The position numbers and the translations under genes are program-made. A model generated the notes under the pieces. The model saw nothing but the letters and a program-made list of their open reading frames with translations, did no database searches and was not told where the DNA came from. This document shows positions 18,545-25,500 of a stretch of 64,000 nt of DNA, in pieces. Every line of letters starts with the position of its first letter. The first letter of the stretch is position 1. Source of the stretch: Entomortierella parvispora E1425 (Eukaryota; Fungi; Mortierellomycota); the NCBI GenBank assembly GCA_020891255.1, contig BQFW01000010.1, positions 930,001 through 994,000 of the forward strand, read 5' to 3'.

Positions 18545-20357
18545 TTACCAATCATCTCCCTCGTCCTGCAAGTTTGTAACAGCCCCGACAGCAAAAAGCG
18601 CGGCGTTGCTAGTCAGATGCATTCCCAGACCAGTATAAAGTCCACGAACGCCCCAGGCCGAATACCACGGTCTCGATGTTGAGGACGAAGATCCCGAAGA
18701 AGCCTTCGAGACCCGTTTGTGATGTCCTCCTTCCTCCTTGATAATCCTGTACACACAGTCCACCATACCCACATAGGGCCTCTTTCTTGTTTCAACCACG
18801 GTGCGATACTTTTTGCTGCCGCTGCTTGGTGCGCGTCCTTGAGATTGAATCTGAATCTGCAATCTCTTGCGAACTGTCTCGATGGGAAGGCGGATCAAAA
18901 GCTCAATGGTGTTTAGACCAAGCTCTGCAAGAGAGTAGAGAACTGGAGAATCTGCGGCCGACAACTTGAAGACCCGATCGATAATCAAAGGAATCGAGTT
19001 GGCCATCAAGGGGGTCAACGTATGGTAAATCAAGGTGGGGAACAAGTTCACGCCACCCCAAAGTGCAGACACTCCTTCTTCCGAGATAATGGTCGAGAAG
19101 CAGTTGATCATACCGCTATACTTGCGCTGCAAAGGATTCGCAGTTTGCACAATCAATCTAATTATAAAAAAAATGTTAGAATGTCTCTGGGTCCACAACA
19201 GTCGTCTTTCCTAGATTTATATTGTACCGTACCGAGTGCGGACAAGCTCCAAAGGAGACAGAATAAAACCAACAACGAGGTGACTGGTGACCATGGTGGC
19301 AATGTTGGGTCCGACATGATCCAAGTGCACCAGTGGGATCGTGTCATCATAGAGATCAAATGTGTCGTTCAGCGTCGCCTCCAGAGTGGGTTGAGCAAAG
19401 AGATGCAGCATCTCGTAGATCCAGTTGGTATATTGGCCTATGAACAATAAGGGATAGCTGTTAGTGAATCGATTACAACACACCATCGTTTGCCCGGCCT
19501 TGGAGTAAACAAGCAGTTACCCTTCCAAAGCGACATCCAGCCTTCGGTAGGGTGCTTTGAGAGATCAGTCACCGCCTTCCAAACACCTCCTTCGATGGGC
19601 GCCATTTGGTAAGCAGGTCGACTCTCTTCATCATAGACACTGCTCCTGGCGGCAGAATCTGTGGGAGCAACGGATGGCGTCTCATAACGGCTGGGTTCAT
19701 TATAACGGCTAATCAGTCCACTGTCCCTGGGCGATCCATATGCATCCCGAGAGCTGTTGCTGGGCAGGTTGCCGTATTGGCTGGTATAGTAACCAGAGGT
19801 CGCAGAGGTCTGGTGGATGGTCGAGCCGGTGCGGTCGTTATAAAAGTCGCGTTCACGCTCACTCTCAATCTCCAAAACCCTCCTGTTGGCAGCCTCGCGC
19901 TCGGCCTACGGTTGAAACAAAGCAAAGGCAAGGATTATTAGCATCATGAAAGAGCTCAAGCCTTCGTGTCAAAAAGAACAAAGAACAGCACGAATACAAA
20001 GAAGGAGGCAAGAACTTCTACCGTAGACAATACCTGTTCCGCAAGGTCCTGCTCATCGCCATTGAATCCGTCGTCATTGGGCAAGTACTGAACCTGCAGC
20101 AATGTCTGCCCGGCTTCGAAAGGGGCAGCAATGGCGAGGGTCATGTACTTGACAAAGCCATAGCTGAGGAGCTCCTTGGCGGCAGTCTGTGAGTTGAGTT
20201 CGTTCTGGGCGGCCAGCTCCTCCTCGAGGGTGGAGGAGGTCAAGGTGGTGTTGTAGTAGGACTGCAGGGGCGAGTCTGAGGCCGAGTAGTAAGGGCGGAG
20301 CAGGTTGGGACTGTTGGCGTTGGGTGCGCCACCCGGGGGAGGAAAGGAGTAGGACAT
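18545..20357 (-). CDS. UGO1: Mitochondrial fusion protein Ugo1 (SLC25A46-like degenerate carrier), multi-exon
   Basis: Carrier-signature variants AIAAPFEAGQTLLQVQY, LSPLELVRTR and RLPIETVRKRLQIQ; also EGWMSLWKG, EEGVSALW and GVRGLYTGL. Confidence 0.85.
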
Positions 20358-20686
20358 GCTGATGTGGATGAAGAAAGGAAGGAAGGAAGGAAGAAAGGAA
20401 GAAAGGAGGAAAGGATGAGGATGAGGATGGATCGAAGCGACGACTCAATGCGAAAAAGAACAAAGAAAAGAAAAGAAAGGACATGCCATCCATCCATCCA
20501 TCCATCCATCTCTGTTTCCTTTCCCTCCCGGCAACACATGCAGTCTCGCGTGTTCCCGAAATGGAAATTGATCTTTTTTTCTTTTCCTTCTTCTCTCTCT
20601 CTCATTCTCATTCTCTCTTTGTTTGCTTTTGTGCTTCTTTCTGTCTTTGCAGCATGCGACTCTCCTCTCACTGGTCATGTCTGGAC

Positions 20687-22402
20687 ATGGCCACACTGAT
20701 GCTCTCCTCCCGCATCCAATCCCATGCCCGCTTGACTGCCACGCGATTGTTTCCCGAGATCAGAGCAACAAGCGCGACCAAGGCTCTGTTCTCGTCCAAA
20801 GCGTCTACAGCTGCAACGTCTGGTTCTGATACAGGTCGACCCTCGTCACGCCCTTCCTCATCCGAAAAGAACTCTGATGGAGCAGAGAGAAAGAGTGCGC
20901 GACCAGCTCGATCCTCAAGCCACGGCCCTGGATCCAACAAGGGAAAGGAGAGTAACCAGAATCCGCCAAAGCACCGGCATCCTACAGACCCTTCCCCTGG
21001 GAACCAAGGTTGTGGGCCAGGCGAGGAAGGACAGACCAAGGACACTGCCAATAAACCCAACGATCGCGTCAGGAACACAAAAGGCAACAAGGCACCCAAA
21101 CCTCGGCCTGTTCAAAAGAACATGCCCACAAACTTTCGCCCCCTCCCAGCAACAGAGCGGGTAATGCATCGCTCTTTTTTCGTCAAAGGATAGCAGCTGC
21201 ACATTTTCTCTTGCTAATTATTCTTTTTTTCTTCCAATAATTATCAAAACGTAGATCGAATCCTTGGACAAGCAGGCGGTACAGGAGCTTTTTACAAAGA
21301 GAGCTGGAGCGTTCAGTGTGGCCAACGATGTCTTCTCCATCAAAGCGGCCCCTATGCCCTTCCGGAAACCACCCCCTCGTAAGCGTGCCTACTATACCAC
21401 CTTCTTGAACTGGCTCATGTCCTACCCCAGTGTCGTTCTTTTCTTTTGCTGATTTCATGCAGGCAAGCTAATTTGGATGTCATCTTTATTCTAGCGGATA
21501 TACCCTTATTTGTGCGAAAGGCCATGCAAGAATATGACAGAGCCATGGCAAAATACAAGGAGCAGCTGCAGGAATACGAGCGCGAGTCCGCTTCAGCTTC
21601 CCCTGATCAGGCCACCCCAACACCTCCCGAGCTCCCTCGGCCCATGATTCAGTACAAACTCGCCAACAGGAGACAATATCCACAAACGATCGACAGTCCA
21701 CACCCGCCCTTTCGAGTCTCGTTTATGACCTCCAAGAAAGTTGTATCCAAATTGGCCACTGATCGCAACATGGTCAGGAAAAAACTGGTGGCTGCAGCGG
21801 AGATGGTCTTTCGAGGTGATGCTGCTGCTGTTGCGAACACAATCACGTCAGATAGCACAACATCACCTGCTGCCTCTGTCCCAACATTGGCTCGACCAGG
21901 ATACGAATACCTGATCTTCCCAAAGAAAGCGGCCATGTGGACGACTCAGGAGAAGCTGATGGTGCTCATGGTGAGGGACCTTCAAAATCCAAAACTGTAC
22001 GGTGAGCGGGACACGTCAAAGTCAAAGTCCAAATCGACCCAAACTTCACCAAAAAACCGACCAGAGACCTCTGAAAATGTCGATGCGGACCATGCCGATG
22101 CTCTCGCAGAGTCCAAAGTGGAACACGACAAACGAATGATCAGCGATCCCGAAATCAAGTTTCGATGGAAATACAATCGAGCACCGATCCTGGAGCCATT
22201 CTGGAAATACGCTCTTCCAAACCCATTGACTCGTGTTCAACAAAGCAATGCCTTCTTGAATCGCTTTTGCCCTGAAGCCCAAGAAGCACTTATTCCTCTT
22301 CGACAGGAAGCAGGCCGTCTTCGAAAAGCTGCGGTGCTCCGTGAGAGTAAGCTACAGAGGCGCAGGAGTAAGAGGTTTTCAAAACCATCGGTCTCTGTGT
22401 AG
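20687..22402 (+). CDS. Probable mitochondrion-targeted bacterial-type RNase P protein (RnpA)-like protein, 3 exons
   Basis: Exons 20687-21160, 21255-21378 and 21495-22402 have consistent GT-AG phases. Presequence-like start MATLMLSSRIQSHARLTATRLF. RnpA-like blocks: PLPATERI...VQELFTKR; VFSIKAAP; FRVSFMTSKKVVSKLATDRNMVRKKLVAAAEMVF; GYEYLIFPK; final helix QEKLMVLMVRDL. Confidence 0.7.
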
Positions 22403-22512
22403 GAGTACCTTTTCAATAAATAAGCGTCCAAAGGGCTTTATTCGACTTTTTGTTTGATAGTACACTTGTTATACCAGTGACAAGAGGTTTGATAACTCTG
22501 TCAGTGCGTCCA

Positions 22513-25500
22513 TCAAGCCTGGATAGGCTCTGCGAAAGAGAAGCAAGATGCATTGGCAAGAATAGCCAAAGACCGGATCTTGGCAAGGACCTCGGTTGAT
22601 TCGAGAACGGACGCTGGCAGAGCAGGGTATGACATGGGTAGATGCTACATTTTTTTTCATCATCGTTGAGAAAAGTTAGAAAAAAAAAGGACGAAAGCGC
22701 AGCTTGTATATTGCAAGTCATTTTGTTCTTTACCTTTGGCTCTGTAAAAGCCACATGCGCCTTGAGAATGATGTGGCACAGTGCAAAGCGAATCATAAAC
22801 TGTCGCAAGAATTCATCCTGAAGGAATCTCCTCAGTGATTTATCTAATTAATGAGGAATGTTAGAACTGCTCATTGAGACTGATATCTAATACGAAAATA
22901 TAGCTAGCACTGAAATTACCAAGAGATGCTGCTGCCATGAGCTCGGCGATCTTGCCTTCGGCCTGCGTAATAAGTCCTGCACACTGCTCCCAGGTATCTG
23001 GGCTTATTTGAGCAATACCAGAAATAAAACTAAAGGCCAGCAAAGGCGCATGCAAGAATAGCGTAAACAATCCTCCGACTTGAGAAGTATCTATACAGTC
23101 ATCGATGTATGAACTGTTAATACGGCCATCAAGTAATCAGATACCGTTCCTCGCGACCAAGATAACTAGTTTTACCTGGAATAGAGGCAGGATATTCTGC
23201 GGGTGAAAGCAAGCTCATATATGGATGATTGAAAACTCGAGGCATGTCCTAAATGTATTCCGCCGCGGATTAGTATCCATGTCAAACGATGCACTTGCGG
23301 TTCATTCGAATGGAACATTGACCCTGTCTTACCGCAAACGCAACACTGTTGTTGCTGTCTACAATAAGGAACATAGGTTTTCTTGTAAAAGGCAACAAGT
23401 CTCCTGGGTGTAAGCAATGGCTGATGCTCTGCTGTTCCTGATCAGCATTGTCCACGACTTTACGTGAGTTTGTCAAGATTCCGCCATGGTAGCCTGTTGA
23501 AAGAAGTGTAAGAGAGCCATCAGAATTAAGCGACGACGGATATACAGCTTACAAAATAAAGTACAAACCTTTTGCGCCAGAGTTGTCGGGAACTGAGCGT
23601 TTTGATCCGTCGGCAGATATGTAGATCAGCAATGCCGAGTCGCTGGATACCTCCTATAATGATGCGTTGAACTGTTAATTCTGTGAACAAACCCTATATC
23701 TGCAAGCTCCACCCCCAGACATCTACCTTAAATGCAGTAGCAAGATAGACCATCAGCTGGCTCAACGTGGGCCTGTAGAGCAGATATTTATGAGGGTTCG
23801 AGCGCTTGACAGACTTTTCAGATTGACGTCTCTGGGCAACAGTTGACTCTTCAGCGGATTCATCCTTGACAGGTGCGTTCAATCCAGCGTCGACATTAAC
23901 CCCTCCTGTTGCAGAGGAAACCGCGCTGAGTCCATTGTCTTTGGAGCCATTATCTGTTGCTCTAATTTGCGAAGTTTCTCTTTCTAGAGGTGCATAACTA
24001 TGTTAGCAAGGCACGGTCCCTTACAAAGAACATTGTAGGATTTGGATACCCACCAAGGGACTGCAGTATCCGGTACATATCGATGGTAAGCTCGGAAAAC
24101 TTGATCTGATGAAGAGGCAGCATGTATTAGAGCTAGGCGAGGCAAGTTGGTTCCCAGAAAGATATTATACAATTATACATGGAACTGAAGGATACCTGGT
24201 TATGAGCGTTGCCAATCAATATGGCTTCCTGAAGTCTCATTTTTGTAGAAGATGACCCGTCTTTGTCCAAAGCTGCAGCGACAATTGGACTAGTTTGAAG
24301 ACGCCTAGTCACAGGCAAGTACGTTCCATTGGAGTTGACGGGATGCAGCTTTTTCTCCGCCTTGAGATAAATAAAGTGGAGGCTTATTAGAGCCGGGTAC
24401 AACGTGCACTTTCACTACACGATACAGCTGAAGGCATACATACATCTGTGAAAGAAGATATTTCCTGAAGCACAAGCTGCCACTCTGATGCATCTGGTGG
24501 CCTGTACATGGTGACATACTCGTTCACAAGCGCTGCAAGTTCGTCCTTAAGGGTCGAAATGATATCGCGGTTGTTGAGTAGCAAACAGACAACTGTGAAT
24601 CTGGCGTAGTAACGCAGCTTTTTGATCATCAGCGCCGAACTAGAAGGTGTTTTGTGCCAATGAATACACGTGAGCAATTGAGGATAACACAATAAGTACA
24701 GTTGCACTTTGCCTTGCATCCATCACGTCTTACCTCTTGATTTCCGAAATCTCGTTAAAATATCTTCGCTCTCGGATAGCATCGTAAAACACATACGACT
24801 CCTGAAGATAGTTCGTCTCACTTGTACGCAGGCTGTGGGGAAAGGAGGGGTTGTAAAGTTCAAAAGGGTAAATGGTGGAATCATCTACCCAGATTTCCGA
24901 ACGTCTTCAACAAACCGGGACTGTGACTAACTTACTAATAATGGTAATACAGCTGTCCAATCTTGGATGCAATTTCTCCAACTTCCCATCGCTTCAATCC
25001 ATAGCTGTTCTCGAGGACAAACCTGTGCGGTTTCGGAGGGAAATCATGCGCATCAATTTAGTCACAAGAACCTTAATGCAGAGCACGATACAACATATCG
25101 GTAACAGCATCAAAACAAAGGGCAAAGGACCCTTCTCTTTTCCTCAAGAAGCTCACCTGTTTTGCTGTTGAAAACGCCAGAGCTGCAATGTTGGATTACA
25201 ACAGGAAGGGAAAGCACAAGATGTCAGAAAATTGGGTGACCTGTGCCAAGCAAAAGCAACGGCATGTCGGATAAATCAAGATTTCCCGCTGTTCCAGTGG
25301 GTGTGTCGTCCTGCAAAAGATCAAGTCTACCTTGGAAAAGATCTCGAACGTTTTTTGAAAGTACGGCTGCCACTGTTTCGCCCCTGTAGGGGGAAGATCT
25401 CTGCGTGCGTGTACGTGCCGATGCAAGAAGAATGAAGAGTTGATCAGATAGTATGTTCAATCAGATACTCCAAGCAGCATTATCTCCGTGAGAAGATCTC

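Follow-up and report, generated by a model that had tools for sequence, protein, structure and literature searches.

A spliced nuclear gene of Entomortierella parvispora for a predicted, markedly enlarged bacterial-type RNase P protein, probably a partner of the mitochondrial RNase P RNA

We analyzed a window of 64,000 nucleotides from the fungus Entomortierella parvispora E1425 (contig BQFW01000010.1, positions 930,001 to 994,000 of the forward strand), in which one gene is predicted to encode a large relative of RnpA, the protein of bacterial-type ribonuclease P (RNase P). The gene has three exons and two introns, both with GT..AG ends, and read-through into intron 1 meets a stop codon at position 21193. 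The spliced product is identical to EMPS_07513, a protein of 512 residues deposited for this species as a "hypothetical protein". Profile searches and structural models point to an RnpA domain within this product, interrupted by two insertions and flanked by extensions at both ends. The coordinates of these features, and of the neighboring ones, are given in Table 1.

Table 1. Features of the RnpA-like gene and of its upstream neighborhood, in positions of the window (aa, amino acids)
Feature	Position	Strand	Details
Exon 1	20654..21160	+	Codons 1-169; presequence-like N-terminus ~aa 1-45; linker ~aa 46-160; start of the RnpA domain (LPATER)
Intron 1	21161..21254	+	GTAATG...TAG, 94 nt
Exon 2	21255..21378	+	aa 170-210 and first base of codon 211; alpha1 at 21270-21296, beta1-beta2 at 21312-21353
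Intron 2	21379..21494	+	GTAAGC...TAG, 116 nt, phase 1
Exon 3	21495..22402	+	aa 211-512 and stop codon (22400-22402)
Insertion 1, beta2-beta3 loop	21354..21709	+	aa 203-282, ~80 aa; split by intron 2; placed by alignment to short fungal and bacterial RnpA and by the models
Strand beta3 (FRVSFMTSKK) and helix alpha2 with RNR-like motif	21710..21811	+	Motif LATDRNMVRKKL at 21752-21787; PF00825 match; hhalign 99.3%
Insertion 2, alpha2-beta4	21812..21898	+	aa 317-345, 29 aa, Ala/Ser/Thr-rich; pLDDT ~60-65
Strand beta4 (GYEYLIF) and helix alpha3 (through NPKLYG)	21899..22003	+	Placed by alignment, hhalign and models
C-terminal extension, Mortierellaceae-specific	22004..22399	+	~130 aa; conserved in the family
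Divergent intergenic region	20358..20653	.	296 bp between start codons; CT-rich; (GGAA)n and (CCAT)n runs
Neighboring multi-exon gene of the mitochondrial carrier family	18545..20357	-	Low end is that of the last open reading frame piece examined; ATG at 20357

The RnpA-like gene is a real eukaryotic nuclear gene, with two spliceosomal introns at positions that are conserved in three species. Mortierella polycephala and Entomortierella lignicola have both introns at exactly these codon positions, the first between ..ER and IE.. and the second after the beta2 strand, and the orthologous proteins read without a break across both splice junctions. The unspliced locus (20648-22600) is also present in a DNA run that carries the same species label, at ~93% identity, with 135 substitutions over 1953 nt and many indels. 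The label Entomortierella parvispora therefore covers quite divergent strains. In this strain, ~7% divergent from the window, the exon indels are all multiples of three nucleotides, and indels of 1 and 4 nt are found only within the two introns (1, 3 and 4 nt in intron 1, 1 nt in intron 2). Among the exon changes listed between the strains, 21 of 34 are non-synonymous. Those in the N-terminal linker are mostly so, in agreement with the poor conservation of the linker among species, and the linker indels are again all multiples of three. Three other runs with this species label, for which no library type is recorded, contained nothing of the locus.

A preliminary description of this stretch, made from the sequence without database searches, had placed the gene at 20687-22402. 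The stop codon stands at this position and the start is to be revised, as the deposited gene model begins at ATG 20654, 11 codons (33 nt) further upstream. This ATG is probably the likelier start, because the motif HW(S/T)(C/F)LD, encoded upstream of 20687 (HWSCLD in the window), is conserved in orthologues. Directly 5' of ATG 20654, a polypyrimidine run (20625-20656) ends in ..tctttgcag and resembles a splice acceptor; the gene may carry an intron in its 5' untranslated region.

The similarity of the product to RnpA is, by sequence comparison, far beyond what chance would give. We built a profile from five proteins of the family, all from Mortierellaceae, and searched it against 1.84 billion representative proteins (E <= 1e-3). 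It returned 67 matches, 16 of which are members of the family, and each of the other 51 (51/51) carries PF00825, the Pfam domain of RnpA (best E 1.8e-25 in a Pfam scan). The core alone, from beta3 to alpha3, was aligned with hhalign to 23 bacterial-type RnpA with a probability of 99.3%, an E of 1.2e-20 and 35% identity over 79 columns. Searched alone against Pfam, the core matched PF00825 in six of eight orthologues (best E 5.5e-6), and two of these cores pass the gathering score of the domain (23.2 and 23.7 bits for a cut-off of 22.3).

The structural models are consistent with this assignment and extend it to the rest of the domain. An AlphaFold model of residues 150-512 has a mean predicted local distance difference test score (pLDDT) of 79.4 and a predicted template modelling score (pTM) of 0.74. 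Its core elements are a helix (175-183), four strands (189-192, 196-202, 283-287 and 347-353) and two further helices (298-316 and 362-373). When the model was searched with Foldseek, the top 14 matches in the PDB and the top 30 in Swiss-Prot were all RNase P proteins (RnpA). With VIA-align its residues 16-229 (model numbering) pair with residues 5-115 of the Thermotoga maritima RnpA (Z 13.1, 107/111 residues, 2.2 A), and the model also aligns with that of Bacillus subtilis (Z 13.0, 108/113 residues, 24% identity), both alignments lying at 2.2-2.6 A. They span residues 16-230 of the model and thus include the N-terminal third of the domain. Across all solved RnpA structures the Z-scores range from 13.1 to 8.9, with 103-117 of 109-119 residues covered, whereas other S5-domain-2-like folds (domain IV of EF-G, Snu114) reach at most 6.0. 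Because the alignment behind this first model included bacterial sequences, we built a control model from 19 Mortierellaceae sequences only. It has a lower pLDDT (68.9), an identical topology, and again RnpA as its 13 best PDB matches. Both models place the helix 175-183 and the strands 189-192 and 196-202 in the RnpA sheet and the leader-binding cleft, and every family member keeps two aromatic residues of these elements, namely the F of LF (alpha1) and the F of FSIKA (beta2). As modelled, the product thus contains a complete RnpA fold. A generic S5-domain-2 fold was rejected as an explanation given its Z-scores (<= 6.0 versus ~13 for RnpA), and chance resemblance was rejected on the introns, the synteny and the gap in Z-scores.

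Profile searches and fold comparison strongly support the central proposal of the preliminary description, a nuclear gene for a bacterial-type RnpA with insertions and with N- and C-terminal extensions. The motifs it had listed are all present and in the order given, namely LP..ERI..LF, a strand, FRVSFMTSKKV, LATDRNMVRKKL, GYEYLIF and a final helix. The checks it had proposed include a Pfam or profile search and a structure prediction: the first recovered PF00825 with the core, the family profile and hhalign, with the whole-protein scan blank, and the second predicted the RnpA fold (Z ~13 versus <= 6.0 for the next fold).

The elements of the domain are widely spaced in the protein. An N-terminal extension of ~160 residues precedes them, and its linker portion (~aa 46-160) is of low complexity and poorly conserved. 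LP..ERI..LF lies at the junction of exons 1 and 2 and is followed by the strands with FSV and FSIKA. Two helices, a long one at aa 215-242 and a short one at aa 259-266, then lie in insertion 1, together with a stretch rich in Pro. Extra residues in the same loop are found in some bacterial RnpA (e.g. P0036) and in red-algal relatives. In alpha2, the SKK, the A-x-x-R-N and the two Lys that follow (KK) are invariant in Mortierellaceae (A298, R301, N302, K306 and K307 in the window protein). Insertion 2 is confined to a subgroup formed by Entomortierella and Gryganskiella. The final helix of the domain ends in NPKLYG, after which the C-terminal extension consists of a variable Ser/Lys-rich linker and, from ~22151, of a conserved block RWKNN..WWKHALPNPLGR..AYL, with a long helix (aa 470-505, 22271-22378) that is modelled at a pLDDT of 86-96. 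This extension has no match in Pfam, and a profile covering it found nothing beyond the family among the 1.84 billion proteins.

Several observations weigh against reading the protein as a functional RnpA. Whole-protein scans of Pfam and NCBIfam gave no PF00825 match for the window protein and its three exon products, and none for seven of the eight relatives scanned at full length; the exception is a fragment, which scores 21.6 bits for RnpA. We attribute this to the insertions, which dilute the domain. The core of the window protein itself scores just 14.3 bits on PF00825, because of the second insert. The N-terminal third (alpha1 and beta1-beta2) aligns to bacterial RnpA in the correct register, at an hhalign E that is not significant (0.17). 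A hidden Markov model of this region gave weak, correctly placed matches to the 51 PF00825 proteins, the best five of which are all N-termini of zygomycetes (Mucorales), and the assignment of the N-terminal third is based on these matches and on the models. Family profiles searched against PDB sequences returned no RnpA, their sole match being a spurious one to a lectin (E 0.17). Finally, the motif of alpha2 deviates from the consensus SKK..K.AV.RNRA.RRLRAAA, which we computed from the 51 PF00825 matches. The third residue of R-N-R is M in the window protein and M, F or L across Mortierellaceae, and a later Arg is replaced by V, so RNA binding could be altered.

Orthologues of the gene were found in Mortierella, Haplosporangium, Gryganskiella, Linnemannia, Podila, Actinomortierella and another species of Entomortierella, and all Mortierellaceae members in the databases are annotated as "hypothetical". 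A truncated Mortierellaceae-type protein from a metagenome (P0008, 253 aa) was named 'RNase P protein component' by the Joint Genome Institute without a stored Pfam domain; its core scores 23.7 bits on PF00825.

The window gene sits among eukaryotic genes on a contig of 1.8 Mb, and its surroundings are conserved. Mortierella polycephala and Entomortierella lignicola share one collinear order at this locus (L005 921-10102; L006 993-8868): a cobW-like GTPase gene, a divergent carrier-family gene, the RnpA-like gene and a gene with a SCAI domain. In these two species the head-to-head arrangement with the carrier gene also recurs, and the neighbors are proteins of 515-530 aa with Mito_carr domains. 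In the window, the last open reading frame piece of the divergent neighbor matches Mito_carr (E 1.5e-14), which identifies it, by domain content, as a member of the mitochondrial carrier family. The preliminary description had named it UGO1 and had proposed a shared divergent promoter of 330 bp. The divergent carrier-family neighbor is there, separated by 329 bp if counted from 20687 and by 296 bp from 20654. Its identity as UGO1 is not confirmed: the first exon falls in UGO1-family clusters (score of 0.78 in the atlas), which makes UGO1, or a UGO1-like protein, a weak lead. The intergenic region contains repeats, (GGAA)n at ~20372-20410 and (CCAT)n at ~20486-20508.

RnpA homologues are not restricted to Mortierellaceae, and we found them in all five zygomycete subphyla. 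The nearest relatives outside the family are short nuclear proteins (110-220 aa). Short homologues occur in Mucorales (Syncephalastrum, Radiomyces, Lichtheimia, Phycomyces, Cunninghamella and Chlamydoabsidia), in Glomeromycotina (Gigaspora, Racocetra, Cetraspora, Dentiscutata and Acaulospora), in Syncephalis (Zoopagomycotina) and in Smittium (Kickxellomycotina), and homologues are also present in other Mucoromycotina (Umbelopsis and Calcarisporiella). A few of the short forms have been automatically annotated as 'ribonuclease P protein component' (Smittium culicis OMJ07481.1, Lichtheimia ornata XP_058340342.1 and Gigaspora margarita), the remaining ones being "hypothetical". In Calcarisporiella thermophila, a model of 668 aa (XP_069255663.1) joins an N-terminal RnpA domain to cysteine-synthase-like PALP and CBS domains, and most likely the gene caller ran two neighboring genes together here. 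Beyond fungi, the searches revealed nuclear homologues of red-algal type, one in Agarophyton chilense (CAN8074968.1, P0064) and others in Logan assemblies (P0037, P0044, P0058 and P0069), which are presumably partners of plastid-encoded rnpB. Their beta2-beta3 loop likewise holds a long insert, and their N-termini share a conserved motif, LSLPT(L/F)RERR(Y/F)L.

A quick maximum-likelihood tree was computed from 129 columns, which are too few to place a bacterial donor. Mortierellaceae form one clade in it (support 99), and the red-algal-type sequences form another beside the fungal ones (support 97). A wider group with support 96 joins Mortierellaceae to Mucoromycotina, Glomeromycotina, Smittium and the red-algal sequences, and Syncephalis falls among bacterial sequences. 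Many of the bacterial matches of the fungal profile fall in one group, and among named bacteria its closest relatives are Alphaproteobacteria. Since the sampling of this group follows the query alignment, and thus covers just the relatives of that group, this affinity agrees with a mitochondrial origin but does not count as evidence of one. Two AT-rich profile matches are truly bacterial, with an rnpA-yidC context.

The distribution of fungal RnpA appears to match that of mitochondrial rnpB, the gene of the RNase P RNA, in zygomycetes. We are inclined to think that the mitochondrial RNase P of fungi ancestrally had a bacterial-type RnpA as its protein subunit, that this was kept wherever a bacteria-like mitochondrial rnpB survives, in every lineage of zygomycetes, and that Dikarya and chytrids have lost or replaced it. 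As to the origin of the gene, and to that alone, a retained endosymbiotic gene, as proposed in the preliminary description, is plausible; that an early lineage of fungi instead acquired rnpA from some bacterium by an ancient horizontal transfer is possible but less likely. Such a transfer would fit the punctate spread of RnpA in eukaryotes (prasinophytes, a jakobid, a red alga and zygomycetes; PMC7050145 and our searches), the place of Syncephalis in the tree, and the database search matches, which include no homologue from Dikarya or chytrids. However, most fungal sequences group with the red-algal ones, many bacterial matches of the profile lie near Alphaproteobacteria (with the sampling bias mentioned above), and the pattern is explained just as well by differential loss in step with that of rnpB.

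The proposed RNA partner of this protein is documented in relatives of Entomortierella parvispora. According to a review from 2012 (PMC3790967), rnpB is present in every sequenced zygomycete mitochondrial DNA (mtDNA), mostly near the universal consensus, and the mitogenome of Linnemannia amoeboidea, a member of Mortierellaceae, has it as well (PMC8856043). On the protein side, Rpm2 of yeast, a protein of 105-119 kDa that has no sequence similarity to other RNase P proteins, is the sole fungal mitochondrial RNase P protein identified (PMC4919922, PMC3287206); for the Aspergillus enzyme, seven polypeptides were left without an identification (PMC3790967). The RnpA-like protein is probably, after import into mitochondria, the missing partner of the bacteria-like RNase P RNA encoded in mtDNA. 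Import would be directed by an N-terminus that is basic and poor in acidic residues. The first 40 residues of the window protein include 5 basic and 2 acidic ones and 28% Ser/Thr, and three orthologues have an R-x-(F/Y)-S motif at residues 34-49, which makes a mitochondrial presequence plausible. Once imported, the RnpA core would bind the catalytic domain of the mtDNA-encoded rnpB RNA through alpha2, with its A-x-x-R-N and the basic residues that follow. The 5' leader of mitochondrial pre-tRNA would be held in the cleft formed by alpha1 and the sheet, with the invariant aromatic of LF and the F of FSIKA. The protein would then serve as the cofactor of a ribozyme-type mitochondrial RNase P, in which the insertions and the C-terminal extension probably provide RNA or protein contacts specific to Mortierellaceae.

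It seems unlikely that the protein derives from RnpA and has taken another job, such as other mitochondrial RNA processing or ribosome assembly, with a different protein serving the P RNA. The R-N-(M/F/L) triplet of all Mortierellaceae members, the large insertions, a size four times that of bacterial RnpA, a conserved C-terminal block specific to the family, and the reliance of yeast on the unrelated Rpm2 (PMC4919922) would all be in line with such a change. Yet the invariant residues cluster in the RnpA elements (SKK, A-x-x-R-N, KK, GYEY and the aromatics of alpha1 and beta2), the matches of both database searches include no second, canonical RnpA of Mortierellaceae, and mitochondrial rnpB of the same kind is present in the sister lineages whose RnpA is of the canonical short form. 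It is more improbable still that this RnpA homologue acts outside mitochondria, e.g. with the nuclear RNase P/MRP or in the cytosol, as the two acidic residues among its first 40 might suggest. The only known partner of the RnpA fold is a bacterial-type P RNA, which these fungi encode in mtDNA (PMC3790967), the N-termini of the orthologues are basic with R-x-(F/Y)-S motifs, and a review of the field reports no evidence for an organellar bacterial-type ribonucleoprotein RNase P being co-opted in another compartment (PMC10941002). Lastly, although the sequenced strain harbors an endobacterium (PMC8759367) and RnpA is otherwise a bacterial protein, a contaminant or a recent acquisition, e.g. from the Burkholderiaceae-related Mycoavidus, has a negligible probability and was rejected, as it is contradicted by the two spliceosomal introns at conserved positions, by a locus placed between eukaryotic genes on a 1.8-Mb contig in an order conserved across genera, by the single Mortierellaceae clade (support 99) that groups with other fungi, and by the lack of the rpmH-rnpA-yidC context seen, in contrast, in real bacterial matches.

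RnpA and nuclear-encoded organellar RnpA are already known, and the short zygomycete forms are visible in databases. We found no report of RnpA in fungi in the literature, in a coverage that excluded Lechner et al. 2015 (Molecular Biology and Evolution) and Seif et al. 2005 (Nucleic Acids Research). The Mortierellaceae form is a markedly elaborated variant of RnpA that was overlooked by standard whole-protein annotation. Budding yeast, with Rpm2, is the only fungus for which the protein composition of mitochondrial RNase P is known, and nuclear RnpA across the zygomycete subphyla offers a concrete candidate partner for the bacteria-like mitochondrial P RNAs, with which the co-evolution of RnpA and rnpB becomes traceable across fungi. 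If the RnpA-like protein is indeed this partner, the Mortierellaceae enzyme would be a natural intermediate in which a small cofactor of bacterial type has grown to four times its size and gained two inserts along with a new C-terminal domain. It would give a snapshot of the protein enrichment of an organellar ribozyme, a case for how a minimal bacterial ribonucleoprotein gains protein mass in an organelle, and it would supply the cognate protein for a first reconstitution of a fungal bacteria-like mitochondrial RNase P.

The closest reference for this protein is bacterial RnpA (the C5 or P protein; PF00825; PDB 1A6F, 1NZ0, 3Q1Q and 6D1R), with which it shares the succession of SKK..A-x-x-R-N and a basic helix, the G-Y-(D/E)-Y strand and the aromatics of the cleft. 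The differences are also marked. The window protein has 512 aa whereas bacterial RnpA has ~115, its gene is nuclear, contains introns and lacks the rpmH-rnpA-yidC context, and it carries an insert of 80 aa between beta2 and beta3, another of 29 aa before beta4, and extensions at both ends. It has R-N-M where bacteria have R-N-R, and it is missed by Pfam at the level of the whole protein.

Nuclear RnpA with an organellar role has precedents. The part of PMC4919922 that describes Lai et al. 2011 states that a nuclear bacterial-type RnpA of Ostreococcus tauri serves an organelle-encoded P RNA and complements an E. coli rnpA mutant, and the jakobid Andalucia godoyi likewise has a nuclear RnpA that serves an organelle-encoded P RNA, which PMC7050145 counts among the ancestral traits with a punctate distribution. 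Like the window protein, both are nuclear-encoded and highly diverged with the RnpA domain kept, and their organelle genomes encode a bacterial-type P RNA. The Mortierellaceae form differs in occurring in Fungi, another supergroup, and in being far more elaborated; it is known here from sequence and models. Within fungi, the short zygomycete RnpA, which are the best matches of the profile outside the family, share with it the LF helix, the F-x-(V/I/L)-K strand and S-K-L-A-(V/T)-x-R-N, and are probably its orthologues. They differ in their length of 110-220 aa, in a full R-N-R, in being recognized by Pfam, and in lacking the two insertions and the C-terminal extension. Finally, Rpm2 of Saccharomyces cerevisiae resembles the window protein in the role that we propose, as a nuclear-encoded protein cofactor of an mtDNA-encoded RNase P RNA in a fungus, and is set apart from it by its description as a protein of 105-119 kDa whose partner is a highly reduced RNA.

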